Sequence record: NC_041972.1
Length of the DNA stretch: 64,000 bases
Strand: one strand, 5' to 3'
Part shown: in pieces, positions 50,116-54,044 of the stretch
How the letters are laid out: each line of letters opens with the position of its first letter
Numbering within the stretch: position 1 is the stretch's first letter
Notes under the pieces: model-generated
Databases searched by the model: none
What the model was told of the DNA's origin: nothing
What the model saw: only the letters and a program-made list of their open reading frames with translations
Translations under genes and position numbers: made by a program

Positions 50116-51501
50116 ATGTTGTCATTCGGTGAATTTGTTGAGAAGTCACGCCCTATTCGACCTTTCTTGAATATCGGCGCGGGCTTTGATATCCCAACCG
50201 GTAGCTATCGTTTCGGTAAGCACGGTGAATCTATTCTTAATGGTGGTCTGGCACCATTCATTGCGATTGTTGGTAAAGGCAACACCTTTAAAACAGCGAT
50301 CGGTTGTTTCATGATGACCCGCGTGCTGGAGCGCTACAATAACTCTAACGGTCTGCACTACGATACCGAGTGTACGTTCAGTGCCGATCGTCTTACCAGT
50401 CTTACCAGTCGTCTGGGTCCGAATGCTGCTGCAGAGTGGCTGGCCAACGAACGTATCTACCTGACTGATGACTCCATCATTAAAGGTAACCAGTGGTTTA
50501 AGAAATCGGTGCAGGAATACTCCGAAGCGAAGAAGAAAGCCAAAATGGGCACGCTGCCGTTTGTGGATAAAGATGGGAACTTAATCCCGTATCCATACCC
50601 GACAGTCAACTTTGGCGATTCCATGTCTGAGATGAAATTCGACGATCTGGAAAAGAACTACGCCAAGATGGAAATCGGCCAGGGTGAAATGCAAACGGAA
50701 GCCATGCGTGTGTCGAATGCCAAACGCATGTTAATCGAAAAGACCCAGGGTTACGCCAACGCCGGCGGCATGTATGTCATCATGACAGCGCACTTAGGTA
50801 AAGAGCTGAACATGGATGGTAAACCACAAGAGAAGAAAACCACCTTTATGAAACAAGGTGACAAAATCTCTAAGGTGCCTTCACAGATCCTCTCTCTGCC
50901 AAACAACGCCTGGGAGATCTCTACCGGTACGGTGTTGATTGATAAGAACACCAAAGAGTGGATGTACCCGAAACAGGGTCGCAACGACGTGGATACCAAC
51001 GGTAACCCGGACATGATCACTCTGGTGGCGAAGAACCTGCGCGGGAAGAATGGCCCGTCTGGTGTGCCGTGGGAGTTCGTGATGTCACAGTCTGAAGGCC
51101 TGCTGCCATCCCTGACTGAGTTCCATTACATTAAGAACAACGGCCGTTATGGCCTGGGTGGCAATGACCGTAATTATTATGTTGAATTGTGCCCAGATAT
51201 CAAGCTGCAGCGCACCACCGTGCGTGATCGCATCGACGATAACCCTGAGTTACGTCGGGCATTAGAGATCACCATGGAGATGTGTCAGATGCGTTTCCTG
51301 TGGCATACCCGCGATCCAAAGTACAACATGACTCCTCAGGAACTGCGTGAAGGCCTGGAGAAGAAAGGGTACAAATGGGATCAGCTGCTCAACACCCGTG
51401 GGTTCTGGACGTTTGAAGAAGACAACCATCCATTACCATTCTTAAGCACAATGGATCTACTCCGCATGTATCATGATGAGTATCGCCCATACTGGCTGTA
51501 A
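50116..51501 (+). CDS. uvsX: UvsX/RecA-like recombinase (phiKZ type)
   Basis: 461 aa; FDIPTG, IAIVGKGNTFKT Walker A, YDTE, NFGDSMS Walker B, VIMTAH. Confidence 0.8.
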   Translation: MLSFGEFVEKSRPIRPFLNIGAGFDIPTGSYRFGKHGESILNGGLAPFIAIVGKGNTFKTAIGCFMMTRVLERYNNSNGLHYDTECTFSADRLTSLTSRLGPNAAAEWLANERIYLTDDSIIKGNQWFKKSVQEYSEAKKKAKMGTLPFVDKDGNLIPYPYPTVNFGDSMSEMKFDDLEKNYAKMEIGQGEMQTEAMRVSNAKRMLIEKTQGYANAGGMYVIMTAHLGKELNMDGKPQEKKTTFMKQGDKISKVPSQILSLPNNAWEISTGTVLIDKNTKEWMYPKQGRNDVDTNGNPDMITLVAKNLRGKNGPSGVPWEFVMSQSEGLLPSLTEFHYIKNNGRYGLGGNDRNYYVELCPDIKLQRTTVRDRIDDNPELRRALEITMEMCQMRFLWHTRDPKYNMTPQELREGLEKKGYKWDQLLNTRGFWTFEEDNHPLPFLSTMDLLRMYHDEYRPYWL

Positions 51502-51581
51502 GTGTACCCACTGTGGGAGAGGGTTATCCCTCTCCTTCTTATACCGTCAGTAGAGGGAAATAAGCTAATAGGAAGCAGTAT

Positions 51582-52001
51582 ATGCTTAACAAAGAAATAC
51601 GCATTGTCGTTGCGTCGACTAAAGGTTTCAACGACGCAGAGCGTTTAAAACTGACTATTGACGGCCTCCTGGAAGATATCTATTACCTCAACGAAGGGGT
51701 AGGTGATGAGGACGAGGAGTTGATCACTGATGCCAAGATCGTTTTCATCACCAATGGCGAACACAAAACAGCGGCTGAGTTGCTGCCTGGTGTGTTGGGT
51801 GATCGGAACATCGACATCGAAGTGATCAAGGTTGATTGGTCAAAAGGTAAGAAAGCGTTTTTTGATAACTGCGCTGTATTGGGTGCGAAGTCGACCCACG
51901 GCGTCATTTTTACGGACAGCAAAGATGACGGGATGCAGACACTGCTGAAAGCATGTCTCGATGCCGGCTCACGCGTTCGTACTTATAGCTCTGCTATTTG
52001 A
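51582..52001 (+). CDS. Degenerate SLOG (YspA/DUF2493-like) protein
   Basis: RIVVAS..GFND..L...I...IVF..G...DW..GK.AF..N..V.....VIF.D aligns with the SLOG half of 52492-53373. Confidence 0.55.
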   Translation: MLNKEIRIVVASTKGFNDAERLKLTIDGLLEDIYYLNEGVGDEDEELITDAKIVFITNGEHKTAAELLPGVLGDRNIDIEVIKVDWSKGKKAFFDNCAVLGAKSTHGVIFTDSKDDGMQTLLKACLDAGSRVRTYSSAI

Positions 52002-52015
52002 GAAAGGTAACCCCC

Positions 52016-52462
52016 ATGATAGCCTCAGAAGCTCACGTTAGTATACTTGACGTTAATGTCACCCACGTTGTATGCACAGTTAATTGCGAAGGGCATATGG
52101 GTCGTGGCATAGCCTTGTATCTGCGTAAGTGTATTCCGGGGCTATATGAGCGGTATAAACACCTGTGCAGTTTAGGGATCATCACGGTAGACAAACTCTG
52201 GATCTACCCATCACACCCCCGTCAGATTCTCTGCTTTCCAACCAAAGATAAAACCTGGGAAGACAGCAAGCTTGAATGGATCGAAGCCAATCTCATAAAG
52301 CTTCGTGACAACTACAAAACAAAAGGCATTGTCTCTGTGGCGATGCCTCCTCTTGGATGTGGAAACGGTAACCTAAAGTGGGATGAGGTGCGGAGCCTCA
52401 TTTATGCCATCTTGGGCGATTGTGACCTTGAAGTCCACATCTGTTTAGGTAAACCGAAGTGA
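52016..52462 (+). CDS. DarG/TARG1-like macrodomain ADP-ribosyl glycohydrolase
   Basis: TVNC.G.MG.GIA, I.CFPTK..W..SKLEWI..L..L, SVAMPPLGCGNG.L.W.EV..LI. Confidence 0.88.
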   Translation: MIASEAHVSILDVNVTHVVCTVNCEGHMGRGIALYLRKCIPGLYERYKHLCSLGIITVDKLWIYPSHPRQILCFPTKDKTWEDSKLEWIEANLIKLRDNYKTKGIVSVAMPPLGCGNGNLKWDEVRSLIYAILGDCDLEVHICLGKPK

Positions 52463-52491
52463 GGGAAACACCCTGAATAGGAGCCAGTATT

Positions 52492-53373
52492 ATGTCTGAT
52501 AACGCACGCGTTTTACCCGATCCACGCGAAGATGGCAAGACGCACATCAACGTCTATAGCCGTGGCGCTTCCTGGTTAGGACAGCAACTTTCTAATATGT
52601 CCTACTACGACTTCGCACATCCACGCTACGGCGTGTTCGCCTCGTTGGAGGGCTTCTGGTATTGGTTGTCTACGGGCAAGCAACACGAGGAGTTACGGAA
52701 GCTTGCCGGGGTCAAAGCGAAAATGACCGGCCGGGAGTTCGAGACGATCCCAAATGAAAACTTTGAAGAAGAGTTCAAAGAAGCCATGCGTCTGCGTCTG
52801 GAGCAACACCCGATCATTGCTAACGCCCTGGCTGAATCGTTACTGCCGTTAAAGCACTACTATTGTTACGGTGGGAAAGTGATCGACTTGTATGACCGCC
52901 ACAAATGGCAGATGGACTTCTACGAGGAGTGGCGTAAAGCCAATGCCCCCGAAGACACCACCTTGGTATTGTTGATCTCTGGCTCACGTAAAGAGAAAGA
53001 CTACGACGCCTTTAAGCACATCGTGATGACCTACCTGCAACCGTATATCGACAAGATAAAGGACACGTACAAAATCACCCTGCTTTCGGGGCTCGCCTGG
53101 GAAGGTCCCGATGACATGGCAATTCGTCTGTGTCGGGAAGAAGGCTTCATGTTGATTGGTCTGCCGGCTAAGTGGAAAGAGCAAGGCAAAGCCGCGGGCA
53201 TGATCCGTAATGGTGCCATGGGGCGGTTGTGTAACAAGGCTCTGGTGTTCTGGGATGGCGAATCACCGGGGACAAAAGGGATGATTGATTACCTGAAGAA
53301 AAATACTATAGACCATCTTGTGTATTTACACGGTAAACATGAACCTGACTGGAAAGCCCCGGAGACATCATGA
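52492..53373 (+). CDS. NADAR (T4 gp30.3-like) - SLOG (DUF2493/YspA) fusion
   Basis: N-half LSN...F..P.YG.FASLEGFW..L...LAG..AK..G; C-half ISGSR..DY, LSG.A..G.D, W...GK.AG.IRN..M, VFWDG.SPGTK.MI. Confidence 0.75.
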   Translation: MSDNARVLPDPREDGKTHINVYSRGASWLGQQLSNMSYYDFAHPRYGVFASLEGFWYWLSTGKQHEELRKLAGVKAKMTGREFETIPNENFEEEFKEAMRLRLEQHPIIANALAESLLPLKHYYCYGGKVIDLYDRHKWQMDFYEEWRKANAPEDTTLVLLISGSRKEKDYDAFKHIVMTYLQPYIDKIKDTYKITLLSGLAWEGPDDMAIRLCREEGFMLIGLPAKWKEQGKAAGMIRNGAMGRLCNKALVFWDGESPGTKGMIDYLKKNTIDHLVYLHGKHEPDWKAPETS

Positions 53374-54044
53374 CCCCAGCACGCGAACAGACCCAGCAAT
53401 TTGTGATCGAGGCTATTGCTGAGATTCTCCCCGGTTCTAAGAACCGGGATATCTATATCGACTTCTTCTCGCGGTTGAGCGATGAGGCGTTTGATGCCCT
53501 GATGCAGCGGATGGATGAAGACCAGGAGATCTTCCCCTTCTACCATCCGAACTTTACCGGCACGGTAATTGATGTTGAACGTGTGATCAAGTTAATTGAA
53601 AAGCACGGCGACACTATCATGGAGCAGCTCTGGGATATCGACCCGGAAACCGGACTGCAGTACCTGACTCCATTGAAGTATCCGGTGCTGTTACTTCCGC
53701 TGCGTATTCAGCAGCAGAAGCTGCAGAAGAAGATGTCGATTCCAAAAGACAACAACCACATCGACGATCTGACTAACCAGCCCACCACCGAATCCAAAGG
53801 GGCTTCTTTGTCTTACCCGGAAGTGCAGATCATCTATGCCATGGGTGGTGACAAGATTCTGGAAGAGACCATGAAGGTCCGTGGTGGTGATGAGAAGGCG
53901 TTTCGTGATTACAATAACGAAATCATTGCAAGCGGCGGTGTCACCATTGGTGCAATCAGCAGCAGCAAGACCAAGGTGAAGTCCACCAAAACCGTGCAAG
54001 TGATTCTTGAGGCCATGCACCTGAGCAACAACCTGGCCAGTTAA
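53370..54044 (+). CDS. Virion RNA polymerase beta subunit, C-terminal fragment (phiKZ gp149-like)
   Basis: DPETG..Y..P, LPLR..QQ...KK.S, D..T.QP...SKG..LS.PE, LEE..KVRGGD correspond to RpoB C-terminal motifs. Confidence 0.82.
   Translation: MTPAREQTQQFVIEAIAEILPGSKNRDIYIDFFSRLSDEAFDALMQRMDEDQEIFPFYHPNFTGTVIDVERVIKLIEKHGDTIMEQLWDIDPETGLQYLTPLKYPVLLLPLRIQQQKLQKKMSIPKDNNHIDDLTNQPTTESKGASLSYPEVQIIYAMGGDKILEETMKVRGGDEKAFRDYNNEIIASGGVTIGAISSSKTKVKSTKTVQVILEAMHLSNNLAS

Follow-up and report, generated by a model that had tools for sequence, protein, structure and literature searches.

Erwinia phage vB_EamM_Deimos-Minion, a member of Agricanvirus and a RAY-like, nucleus-forming jumbo phage, encodes a cassette of three linked genes that probably counters ADP-ribosylation of the phage genome. 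The cassette lies in a 64,000-nucleotide stretch of sequence record NC_041972.1 (hereafter, the window), where its genes, denoted here open reading frames (ORFs) 1, 2 and 3, are all located on the plus strand, flanked by a UvsX-like gene and a fragment of the RNA polymerase (RNAP) beta subunit gene. ORF1 (51582-52001; 139 amino acids (aa)) encodes a small, divergent SLOG domain of nucleotide-binding type, ORF2 (52016-52462; 148 aa) an orphan macrodomain of the DarG type, similar to the phage protein AdfM, and ORF3 (52492-53373; 293 aa) a fusion of a NADAR domain with a SLOG domain. We favor, with modest confidence, the reading that the three genes serve counter-defence by clearing ADP-ribose (ADPr) adducts from the phage genome inside the phage nucleus, with ORF2 and ORF3 acting on DNA and ORF1 as a probable partner or regulator of ORF3.

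Under this mechanism, ORF2, a DarG2-like macrodomain, would hydrolyse the DarT2-type ADP-ribose attached to thymidine of single-stranded DNA (ssDNA). The NADAR half of ORF3, a predicted N-glycosidase related to gp30.3 (AdfN) of phage T4, would most likely clear a different base linkage, either that on guanine, as made by DarT1, or one on another base; the SLOG half would most likely tether the protein to ssDNA or to the ADP-ribose moiety; and ORF1 would probably be a non-catalytic partner or regulator of the SLOG domain of ORF3. That a single cassette might erase both DNA ADP-ribosylation chemistries was put forward in the original prediction, made from the nucleotide sequence, and may hold. 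The linked genes and the motifs on which that prediction drew, namely TVNCEGHMGRGIA, FPTK and PPLGCGNG in ORF2, and LSN and SLEGF in ORF3, are all present.

Two lines of evidence bear on the cassette as a whole. First, a 2.1 kilobase segment spanning it is 100% identical to Deimos-Minion and 99.4% identical to another Agricanvirus, phage RAY, a characterised nucleus-forming jumbo phage (PMC10299810). RAY gp153 is 100% identical to ORF3 and, when tagged with green fluorescent protein, co-localises with the phage DNA in the nucleus; that study interpreted it as 'DprA' (PMC10299810). This localization favors a DNA-directed role over a cytoplasmic one, so that sensing or recycling of ADP-ribose by the SLOG domains, as initially suggested, is disfavored. 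Second, in Erwinia phage pEa_SNUABM_37 (SN37), the corresponding locus, in which a UvsX-like gene and a small SLOG gene come first and the RNAP gene last, encodes a single Macro-NADAR-SLOG protein of 429 aa, and metagenomic fusions of this architecture are 422-428 aa long. The existence of natural fusions indicates that ORF2 and ORF3 work together.

The DarG/AdfM-type macrodomain of ORF2

The identification of ORF2 as a DarG-type macrodomain is borne out by matches in Pfam, NCBIfam, PADLOC and the PDB. The Pfam Macro profile (PF01661) matches ORF2 with 39.3 bits (E-value 7e-10), exceeding the 22-bit cut-off, and the DarG profiles of NCBIfam (NF048014) and PADLOC match with E-values of 7e-38 and 4e-41, respectively. 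The NCBIfam match extends over model positions 8-145 of 338, and its score of 130.7 bits stays under the cut-off of 250 set for the full-length model, since ORF2 lacks the C-terminal half of DarG. The best PDB matches are DarG macrodomains (5m3i, E-value 9e-23, and 5m31, E-value 6e-21; from M. tuberculosis and T. aquaticus), with a Thermosipho DarTG fusion also among the best and TARG1/OARD1 far behind, at an E-value of 3e-6. The protein consists of the macro domain only; it contains no C-terminal DarT-binding domain, and no DarT toxin gene adjoins it, which points to an orphan AdfM-like enzyme rather than a DarG antitoxin.

AdfM, a chimallivirus macrodomain encoded by PhiKZ gene 104, was named in 2026 as an enzyme that removes DarT2 ADP-ribose from DNA and rescues DarT2 toxicity (PMC13309987). 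It is imported into the phage nucleus, PhiKZ without AdfM is sensitised to DarTG2, and an N23A mutation reduces the activity (PMC13309987). Removal of ADP-ribose from thymidine in ssDNA and nuclear import have been demonstrated for the AdfM proteins of PhiKZ, PhiPA3 and Asesino only (PMC13309987). [quoted passage not shown] A tblastn search with ORF2 retrieved PHIKZ104 (35% identity, E-value 1e-11) and the macro protein of Asesino (E-value 4e-9), the identity to both AdfM proteins being about 35% across roughly two thirds of the ORF2 length; ORF2 scores higher against bacterial DarG macrodomains and the macrodomain of coliphage DE15 than against PhiKZ gp104.

In an alignment of five sequences (ORF2, AH06, SN37, DE15 and PhiKZ gp104), N23 of ORF2 is aligned with the Asn of AdfM, and both the Lys of the FPTK motif (K77 of ORF2, counted from the ATG start) and the PPLGCxNG loop are retained in all five. 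This Lys was reportedly identified as catalytic in DarG by Jankevicius and co-workers in 2016. With the activity established for AdfM (PMC13309987) and the mutated Asn kept in ORF2, the connection between the macrodomain and DarT2 reversal that the original prediction had drawn is now strong by homology. ORF2 most likely strips DarT2-type ADP-ribose from phage DNA, and the macrodomain part of the cassette reading is well supported by homology.

The ATG at 52016 is the most likely start of ORF2; it is preceded by the Shine-Dalgarno-like GAGAAAGG, and the same start is used in RAY, AH06 and pEa_SNUABM_37, whereas the alternative TTG at 51998 (154 aa; the start given in the mechanical ORF list) is without a Shine-Dalgarno-like signal. 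The 'phosphatase' label that ORF2 carries in GenBank is a legacy Appr-1''-p annotation. A scan of contigs with single-sequence patterns of ORF2 yielded no confirmed relative because the patterns were too strict. No NADAR-like or SLOG-like neighbor of gp104 was found among PhiKZ gp100-109, so the cassette is not a conserved block of chimalliviruses.

The NADAR and SLOG domains of ORF3 and ORF1

The N-terminal half of ORF3 (residues 1-155; 52492-52956) is, as judged by structure prediction, a family profile and profile-profile comparison, a member of the NADAR superfamily of the His-type 'phage NADAR' kind, belonging to the phrog_652 clade. The resemblance to T4 gp30.3 that had previously been noted by eye is hereby substantiated. 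The AlphaFold2 (AF2) model of ORF3, with a predicted local distance difference test (pLDDT) score of 90.6, matches in Foldseek the structure of a Phytophthora NADAR with ADP-ribose, 8bau (probability 1.00; template modeling (TM) score of 0.52 on the target; 174 columns), so that this half does model as a NADAR; 8bau is the sole match among the top 50 outside SLOG and other Rossmann-type folds. A NADAR family profile was built from 59 stand-alone relatives; its best two matches in the whole PDB sequence set are 8bau (E-value 0.0057) and Escherichia coli YbiA, 2b3w (E-value 0.087). Comparison of this family with the T4 gp30.3 family (PF08010, that is, AdfN) by hhalign gave a probability of 96.4 and an E-value of 1.4e-9 over 130 columns, and the gp30.3 profile matched ORF3 alone (E-value 3.3e-4) when run against the 353 stop-to-stop segments of the window. 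The A3 profile gave a weak match to T4 gp30.3 (11.9 bits), hence the need for profile-profile comparison. Two depositors label relatives of the ORF3 NADAR domain 'DUF1768' or 'YbiA'. NCBIfam and PADLOC contained no NADAR match for ORF3, and a single-sequence phmmer search of ORF3 against the PDB produced only noise (RelA, E-value 0.6).

Residue invariance was counted in the 59 relatives. E53 of ORF3 is invariant (59/59) and, in two independent alignments, corresponds to E43 of PnNADAR and E36 of AdfN, both of them tested, which together with E88 of EcC7 represent the Glu that contacts the distal ribose. H122 is equally invariant (59/59) and is aligned with the invariant His in the last strand of the gp30.3 family; His at this position is characteristic of phage NADARs, with Glu found in the YbiA-type and Asp in the DarG1-type domains (PMC11543638, PMC11125620). 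Residues K77, G80 and R81 of ORF3 match the pyrophosphate-binding K75, G78 and R79 of PnNADAR. AdfN-type NADARs of three phage groups counter DarTG1 (PMC11825919; on phage NADARs, see also PMC11125620), and T4 AdfN shares with the N-terminal half of ORF3 the NADAR fold, the invariant Glu (E36) and the last-strand His. ORF3 differs from AdfN in belonging to the phrog_652 clade, which is missed by PF08010 and PF08719, in having Ser at the position of K43, in its N-terminal motif and in the SLOG fusion. The phrog_652 clade, which includes 1,421 clusters at 50% identity and occurs in 535 phage records, is separate from other NADARs and has its own conserved D-G-x-x-H-I-N motif at the N-terminus. 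We infer that the NADAR half is capable of removing ADP-ribose, and the part of the cassette reading that concerns the NADAR-SLOG protein appears plausible.

The C-terminal half of ORF3 (residues ~156-293; 52957-53373) is assigned, from its sequence and modeled fold, to the SLOG superfamily as a DprA-like domain of the YAcAr family, a type that binds DNA or nucleotides. It carries the YAcAr motifs GSR, SGxAxGxD, RN and GxSxGT (alignment A1), and the phrog_289 profile matches it with an E-value of 1.1e-20. The domain had been described as an intact SLOG of the YspA type; the SLOG part of this description is established through homologs and fold, but on its own ORF3 falls short of the Pfam gathering cut-off, with an E-value of 1.3e-4 and 22.1 bits against the required 28.2. 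Pfam YAcAr matches are found in 33 of the 86 multidomain relatives (best E-value 9.6e-13). Foldseek matches of the SLOG half include DprA, ShosA, LOG and the SLOG domain of ThsA (6lhx, 7uxs, 8btp), and dozens of viral YAcAr/DUF2493 proteins are matched in BFVD. With PF02481 (DNA_processg_A), ORF3 gave no match at an E-value of 1 or below, and 8 of the 86 relatives gave weak matches. ORF3 shares with DprA/Smf and with ThsA the Rossmannoid SLOG fold and the GSR-type loop, but lacks the flanking domains of DprA, having a NADAR-like N-terminal half in place of the DprA SAM domain, and, unlike ThsA, contains no SIR2 effector.

When the SLOG profile was run against the 353 window segments, ORF3 came first and ORF1 next. 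ORF1 matches phrog_289 with an E-value of 1.6e-6 and Pfam YAcAr with an E-value of 0.19, and an hhalign comparison of its family with the SLOG family of ORF3 (probability 96.5, E-value 7.4e-10, 119 columns) identifies it, at the sequence level, as a divergent paralog of the SLOG domain of ORF3. The family is narrow: its 15 clusters have lengths of 138-139 aa throughout, and PF10686 was flagged in two relatives. The signature motifs are substituted (GSR to xKG, SGxAxGxD to TNGExKT, and RN to DN), which makes 'degenerate SLOG', the initial label, a fair one. The replacement residues are themselves conserved, however, so ORF1 is under constraint rather than in decay. A decaying pseudogene was ruled out, given that the length and 49 columns are invariant across the 15 clusters down to 52% identity.

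Fusion of NADAR with SLOG, initially singled out as the unusual feature of the cassette, turned out to be common. Among the 86 multidomain relatives of ORF3, the partner domains are YAcAr (33), DUF4326 (30), DprA-type SLOG (8), Macro (4) and DUF488 (2); most of the 59 phrog_652 relatives stand alone, being about 150 aa long and lacking a partner domain. The architectures that combine SLOG, Macro and NADAR, with or without DUF4326, in jumbo phages and giant viruses were previously described by Iyer, Burroughs, Anantharaman and Aravind (PMC7824862, PMC9503650). In four DUF4326-NADAR-SLOG relatives (P0007, P0010, P0012 and P0014), an extra stretch of about 100 aa is inserted between DUF4326 and NADAR (alignment A1). 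This stretch has its own motifs, with the pattern WL...L..RDP..... repeated past DUF4326, and may represent a partial duplication or a further domain.

Substrates of the cassette and rival explanations

The proposed role of ORF3 can be cast in a more specific form, which we advance tentatively: ORF3 (RAY gp153) would be a nucleus-imported DNA de-ADP-ribosylase of a new NADAR clade that does without the canonical Lys and travels along ssDNA by means of its DprA-like SLOG domain, clearing a base adduct (on guanine, on cytidine or through another linkage) that the macrodomain cannot remove. The cassette would thereby repair DNA in the phage nucleus with two chemistries, and ORF1 would regulate it as a degenerate SLOG partner.

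Several observations weigh against a DNA de-ADP-ribosylation cassette. The Lys located 7 residues past the conserved Glu (K50 of PnNADAR, K95 of EcC7/DarG1, K43 of AdfN), which is essential in the E. coli C7 NADAR and important in AdfN, is replaced by S60 in ORF3, and this column contains Ser in 24 of the 59 relatives, Lys in 11, Ala in 10 and Leu in 6. Neither PF08719 (NADAR) nor PF08010 (Phage_30_3) matches ORF3 at an E-value of 1 or below, or any of the 86 relatives at 0.001 or below, and a literature search turned up no assayed member of the phrog_652 NADAR clade. The AF2 model of ORF1, with a five-unit beta-alpha topology, is of low confidence (pLDDT 66), and the fold search with that model was non-specific, retrieving generic Rossmann folds, YpsA ranking 12th among them. 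DarTG systems are present but rare in genomes of E. amylovora (PMC13480210), so the natural selective agent is uncertain. Finally, those who first described such architectures favor soluble ADP-ribose derivatives as substrates (PMC9503650).

The last point leads to the alternative that survives best, although we consider it rather doubtful. Here, the cassette would degrade soluble NAD-derived immune signals or toxins, such as Thoeris-type isomers of cyclic ADP-ribose (cADPR), ADPr-1''P or ADPr>P, and not DNA adducts. The SLOG domains would serve to bind the signal or to cleave it, and the different ribosyl linkages would be shared out between Macro and NADAR, in line with what Iyer, Burroughs, Anantharaman and Aravind suggested for phage combinations of SLOG, Macro, NADAR and DUF4326 (PMC9503650, PMC7824862). 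The similarity of the ORF3 SLOG to the 3'cADPR-binding SLOG of ThsA, exemplified by the three ThsA structures matched in Foldseek, is compatible with such a function, as is the fusion of DUF4326, a predicted ribose-phosphate phosphatase, in 30 of the 86 relatives, and the missing NADAR Lys could mean a non-DNA substrate. Set against this, ORF2 is specifically of the DarG type, and DarG2-like macrodomains, AdfM included, act on DNA; the NADARs assayed to date all hydrolyse guanine-ADPr on DNA; and the protein identical to ORF3 is found with the DNA in the nucleus, while Thoeris-type signaling is cytoplasmic. The Iyer and Aravind papers predict action on soluble derivatives, whereas the DarG-type macrodomain and the nuclear gp153 point here to DNA.

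Unlikely, in our assessment, is the interpretation of ORF3 that prevails for RAY and in GenBank, namely that it mediates recombination in the manner of DprA, together with the neighboring UvsX. ORF1 would then assist by binding ssDNA, the macrodomain would be a generic Appr-1''-p 'phosphatase', and the N-terminal domain of ORF3 would have a structural role alone. The position of the cassette next to the UvsX-like gene, the nuclear location of both gp153 and the UvsX-like gp150, the DprA structures among the top Foldseek matches of the SLOG half and the DNA_processg_A matches in 8 of the 86 relatives are in line with it, and Iyer et al. suggest DprA/SLOG as an additional ssDNA-binding protein of jumbo phages. 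However, ORF3 itself has no Pfam DprA match and fits YAcAr better; its N-terminal half, invariant at the catalytic positions, is a conserved domain of the NADAR type; and the recurrent fusion partners, Macro, DUF4326 and DUF488, are not recombination proteins. Least probable is that the NADAR half is an inactive reader of ADP-ribose or modified DNA that recruits the macrodomain enzyme to damaged sites: the loss of the essential Lys and the natural fusions to a macrodomain in relatives agree with this, but all 59 relatives, most of which stand alone at about 150 aa and lack a partner domain, keep Glu and His in the catalytic positions.

Related systems, gene neighborhood and annotation

The two domain types of the cassette are those of the DarG1 (NADAR) and DarG2 (macro) antitoxins, which reverse ADP-ribosylation of guanine and thymine, respectively, in ssDNA (PMC11543638). 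Bacterial DarTG systems use one or the other, whereas the cassette contains both; unlike DarTG, it includes no DarT gene and no DarT-binding domain, and it is not organised as a toxin-antitoxin pair. A comparable alternation was detected in Chaseviridae. Escherichia phages ST32 and vB_EcoM_DE15 are collinear, with 93-97% identity in the flanks of a hotspot immediately upstream of ssb. The hotspot in ST32 (L006:2713-3471) contains a gene for a phrog_652-type NADAR-like protein and a 65-aa ORF, and in DE15 (L007:2923-3363) a gene for a DarG-like macrodomain that is nearer to ORF2 than is PhiKZ AdfM. By analogy, this swap mirrors the choice between NADAR and macrodomain in DarTG1 and DarTG2.

Part of this picture is already known: the architecture has been described computationally (2021-2022), AdfN has been known since 2025 and AdfM since 2026. 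With the architectures of Iyer and Aravind, the cassette shares the domain set, fusions, gene neighborhoods and YAcAr-type SLOG; a small divergent SLOG paralog like ORF1 is not mentioned in the accessible parts of PMC7824862 and PMC9503650. New here are the assignment, by sequence comparison, of gp152 of RAY and Deimos-Minion to the AdfM kind as predicted members; the reinterpretation of gp153, the nuclear 'DprA', as a NADAR-SLOG protein; the missing Lys as a feature of the phrog_652 clade; the divergent SLOG paralog ORF1; and the swap locus of Chaseviridae.

Should both enzymes act on DNA, phages that form a nucleus would carry paired countermeasures to both DarT chemistries. Such a pairing would extend the 2026 result on AdfM, which presented the phage nucleus as a leaky shield in need of enzymatic back-up (PMC13309987). 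It would also assign a function to the very large phrog_652 NADAR clade, whose members are now labeled 'hypothetical', 'DprA-like', 'phosphatase' or 'GTP-binding', and would make viral SLOG domains of the YAcAr type accessible to experiment for the first time. What is gained in practice at present is a corrected annotation of RAY gp151-153 and their orthologs. Public labels for the three genes are inconsistent and mostly misleading, comprising 'hypothetical', 'DNA binding protein', 'phosphatase', 'ADP-ribose binding protein', 'DprA-like' and 'DNA processing protein A', and PHROG 289 carries the name 'GTP-binding domain'. A DefenseFinder-based survey of Erwinia phages lists no Adf-type gene among its common anti-defence matches.

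The upstream neighbor of the cassette (50116-51501, plus strand) encodes the UvsX/RecA-like recombinase (phrog_97, E-value 1.8e-56); its counterpart, RAY gp150, is annotated as UvsX-like and is nuclear (PMC10299810). The downstream neighbor (53370-54044, plus strand) encodes the fragment of the RNAP beta subunit (phrog_3233, E-value 1.7e-99) and is annotated 'vRNAP beta subunit 2' in RAY. Across the window segments, every domain profile matched the expected ORFs alone. The GC content varies little over the region (0.47-0.52). The 80-nucleotide gap between the UvsX-like gene and ORF1 contains a hairpin resembling a terminator, with a T-rich tail behind it (51519-51534), which is only a consensus match, of a kind whose number in the region is near the shuffle expectation. 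A scan for Sigma-70 promoters and terminators gave counts at or close to the shuffle expectation and is uninformative in a phage with RNAPs of its own.

In Erwinia phage AH06, an 84%-identical relative, two extra small genes, both absent from Deimos-Minion, are located within the cassette. Gene 159 (115 aa; L001:3569-3916) lies between the macro and NADAR-SLOG genes, and gene 161 (94 aa; L001:4801-5085), annotated 'RNA binding protein', precedes the RNAP gene; neither matches the domain profiles of the cassette. In Deimos-Minion, the stop codon of ORF3 overlaps the ATG of the RNAP beta subunit gene (ATGA, 53370-53373), suggesting translational coupling of the counter-defence gene with the polymerase subunit gene.

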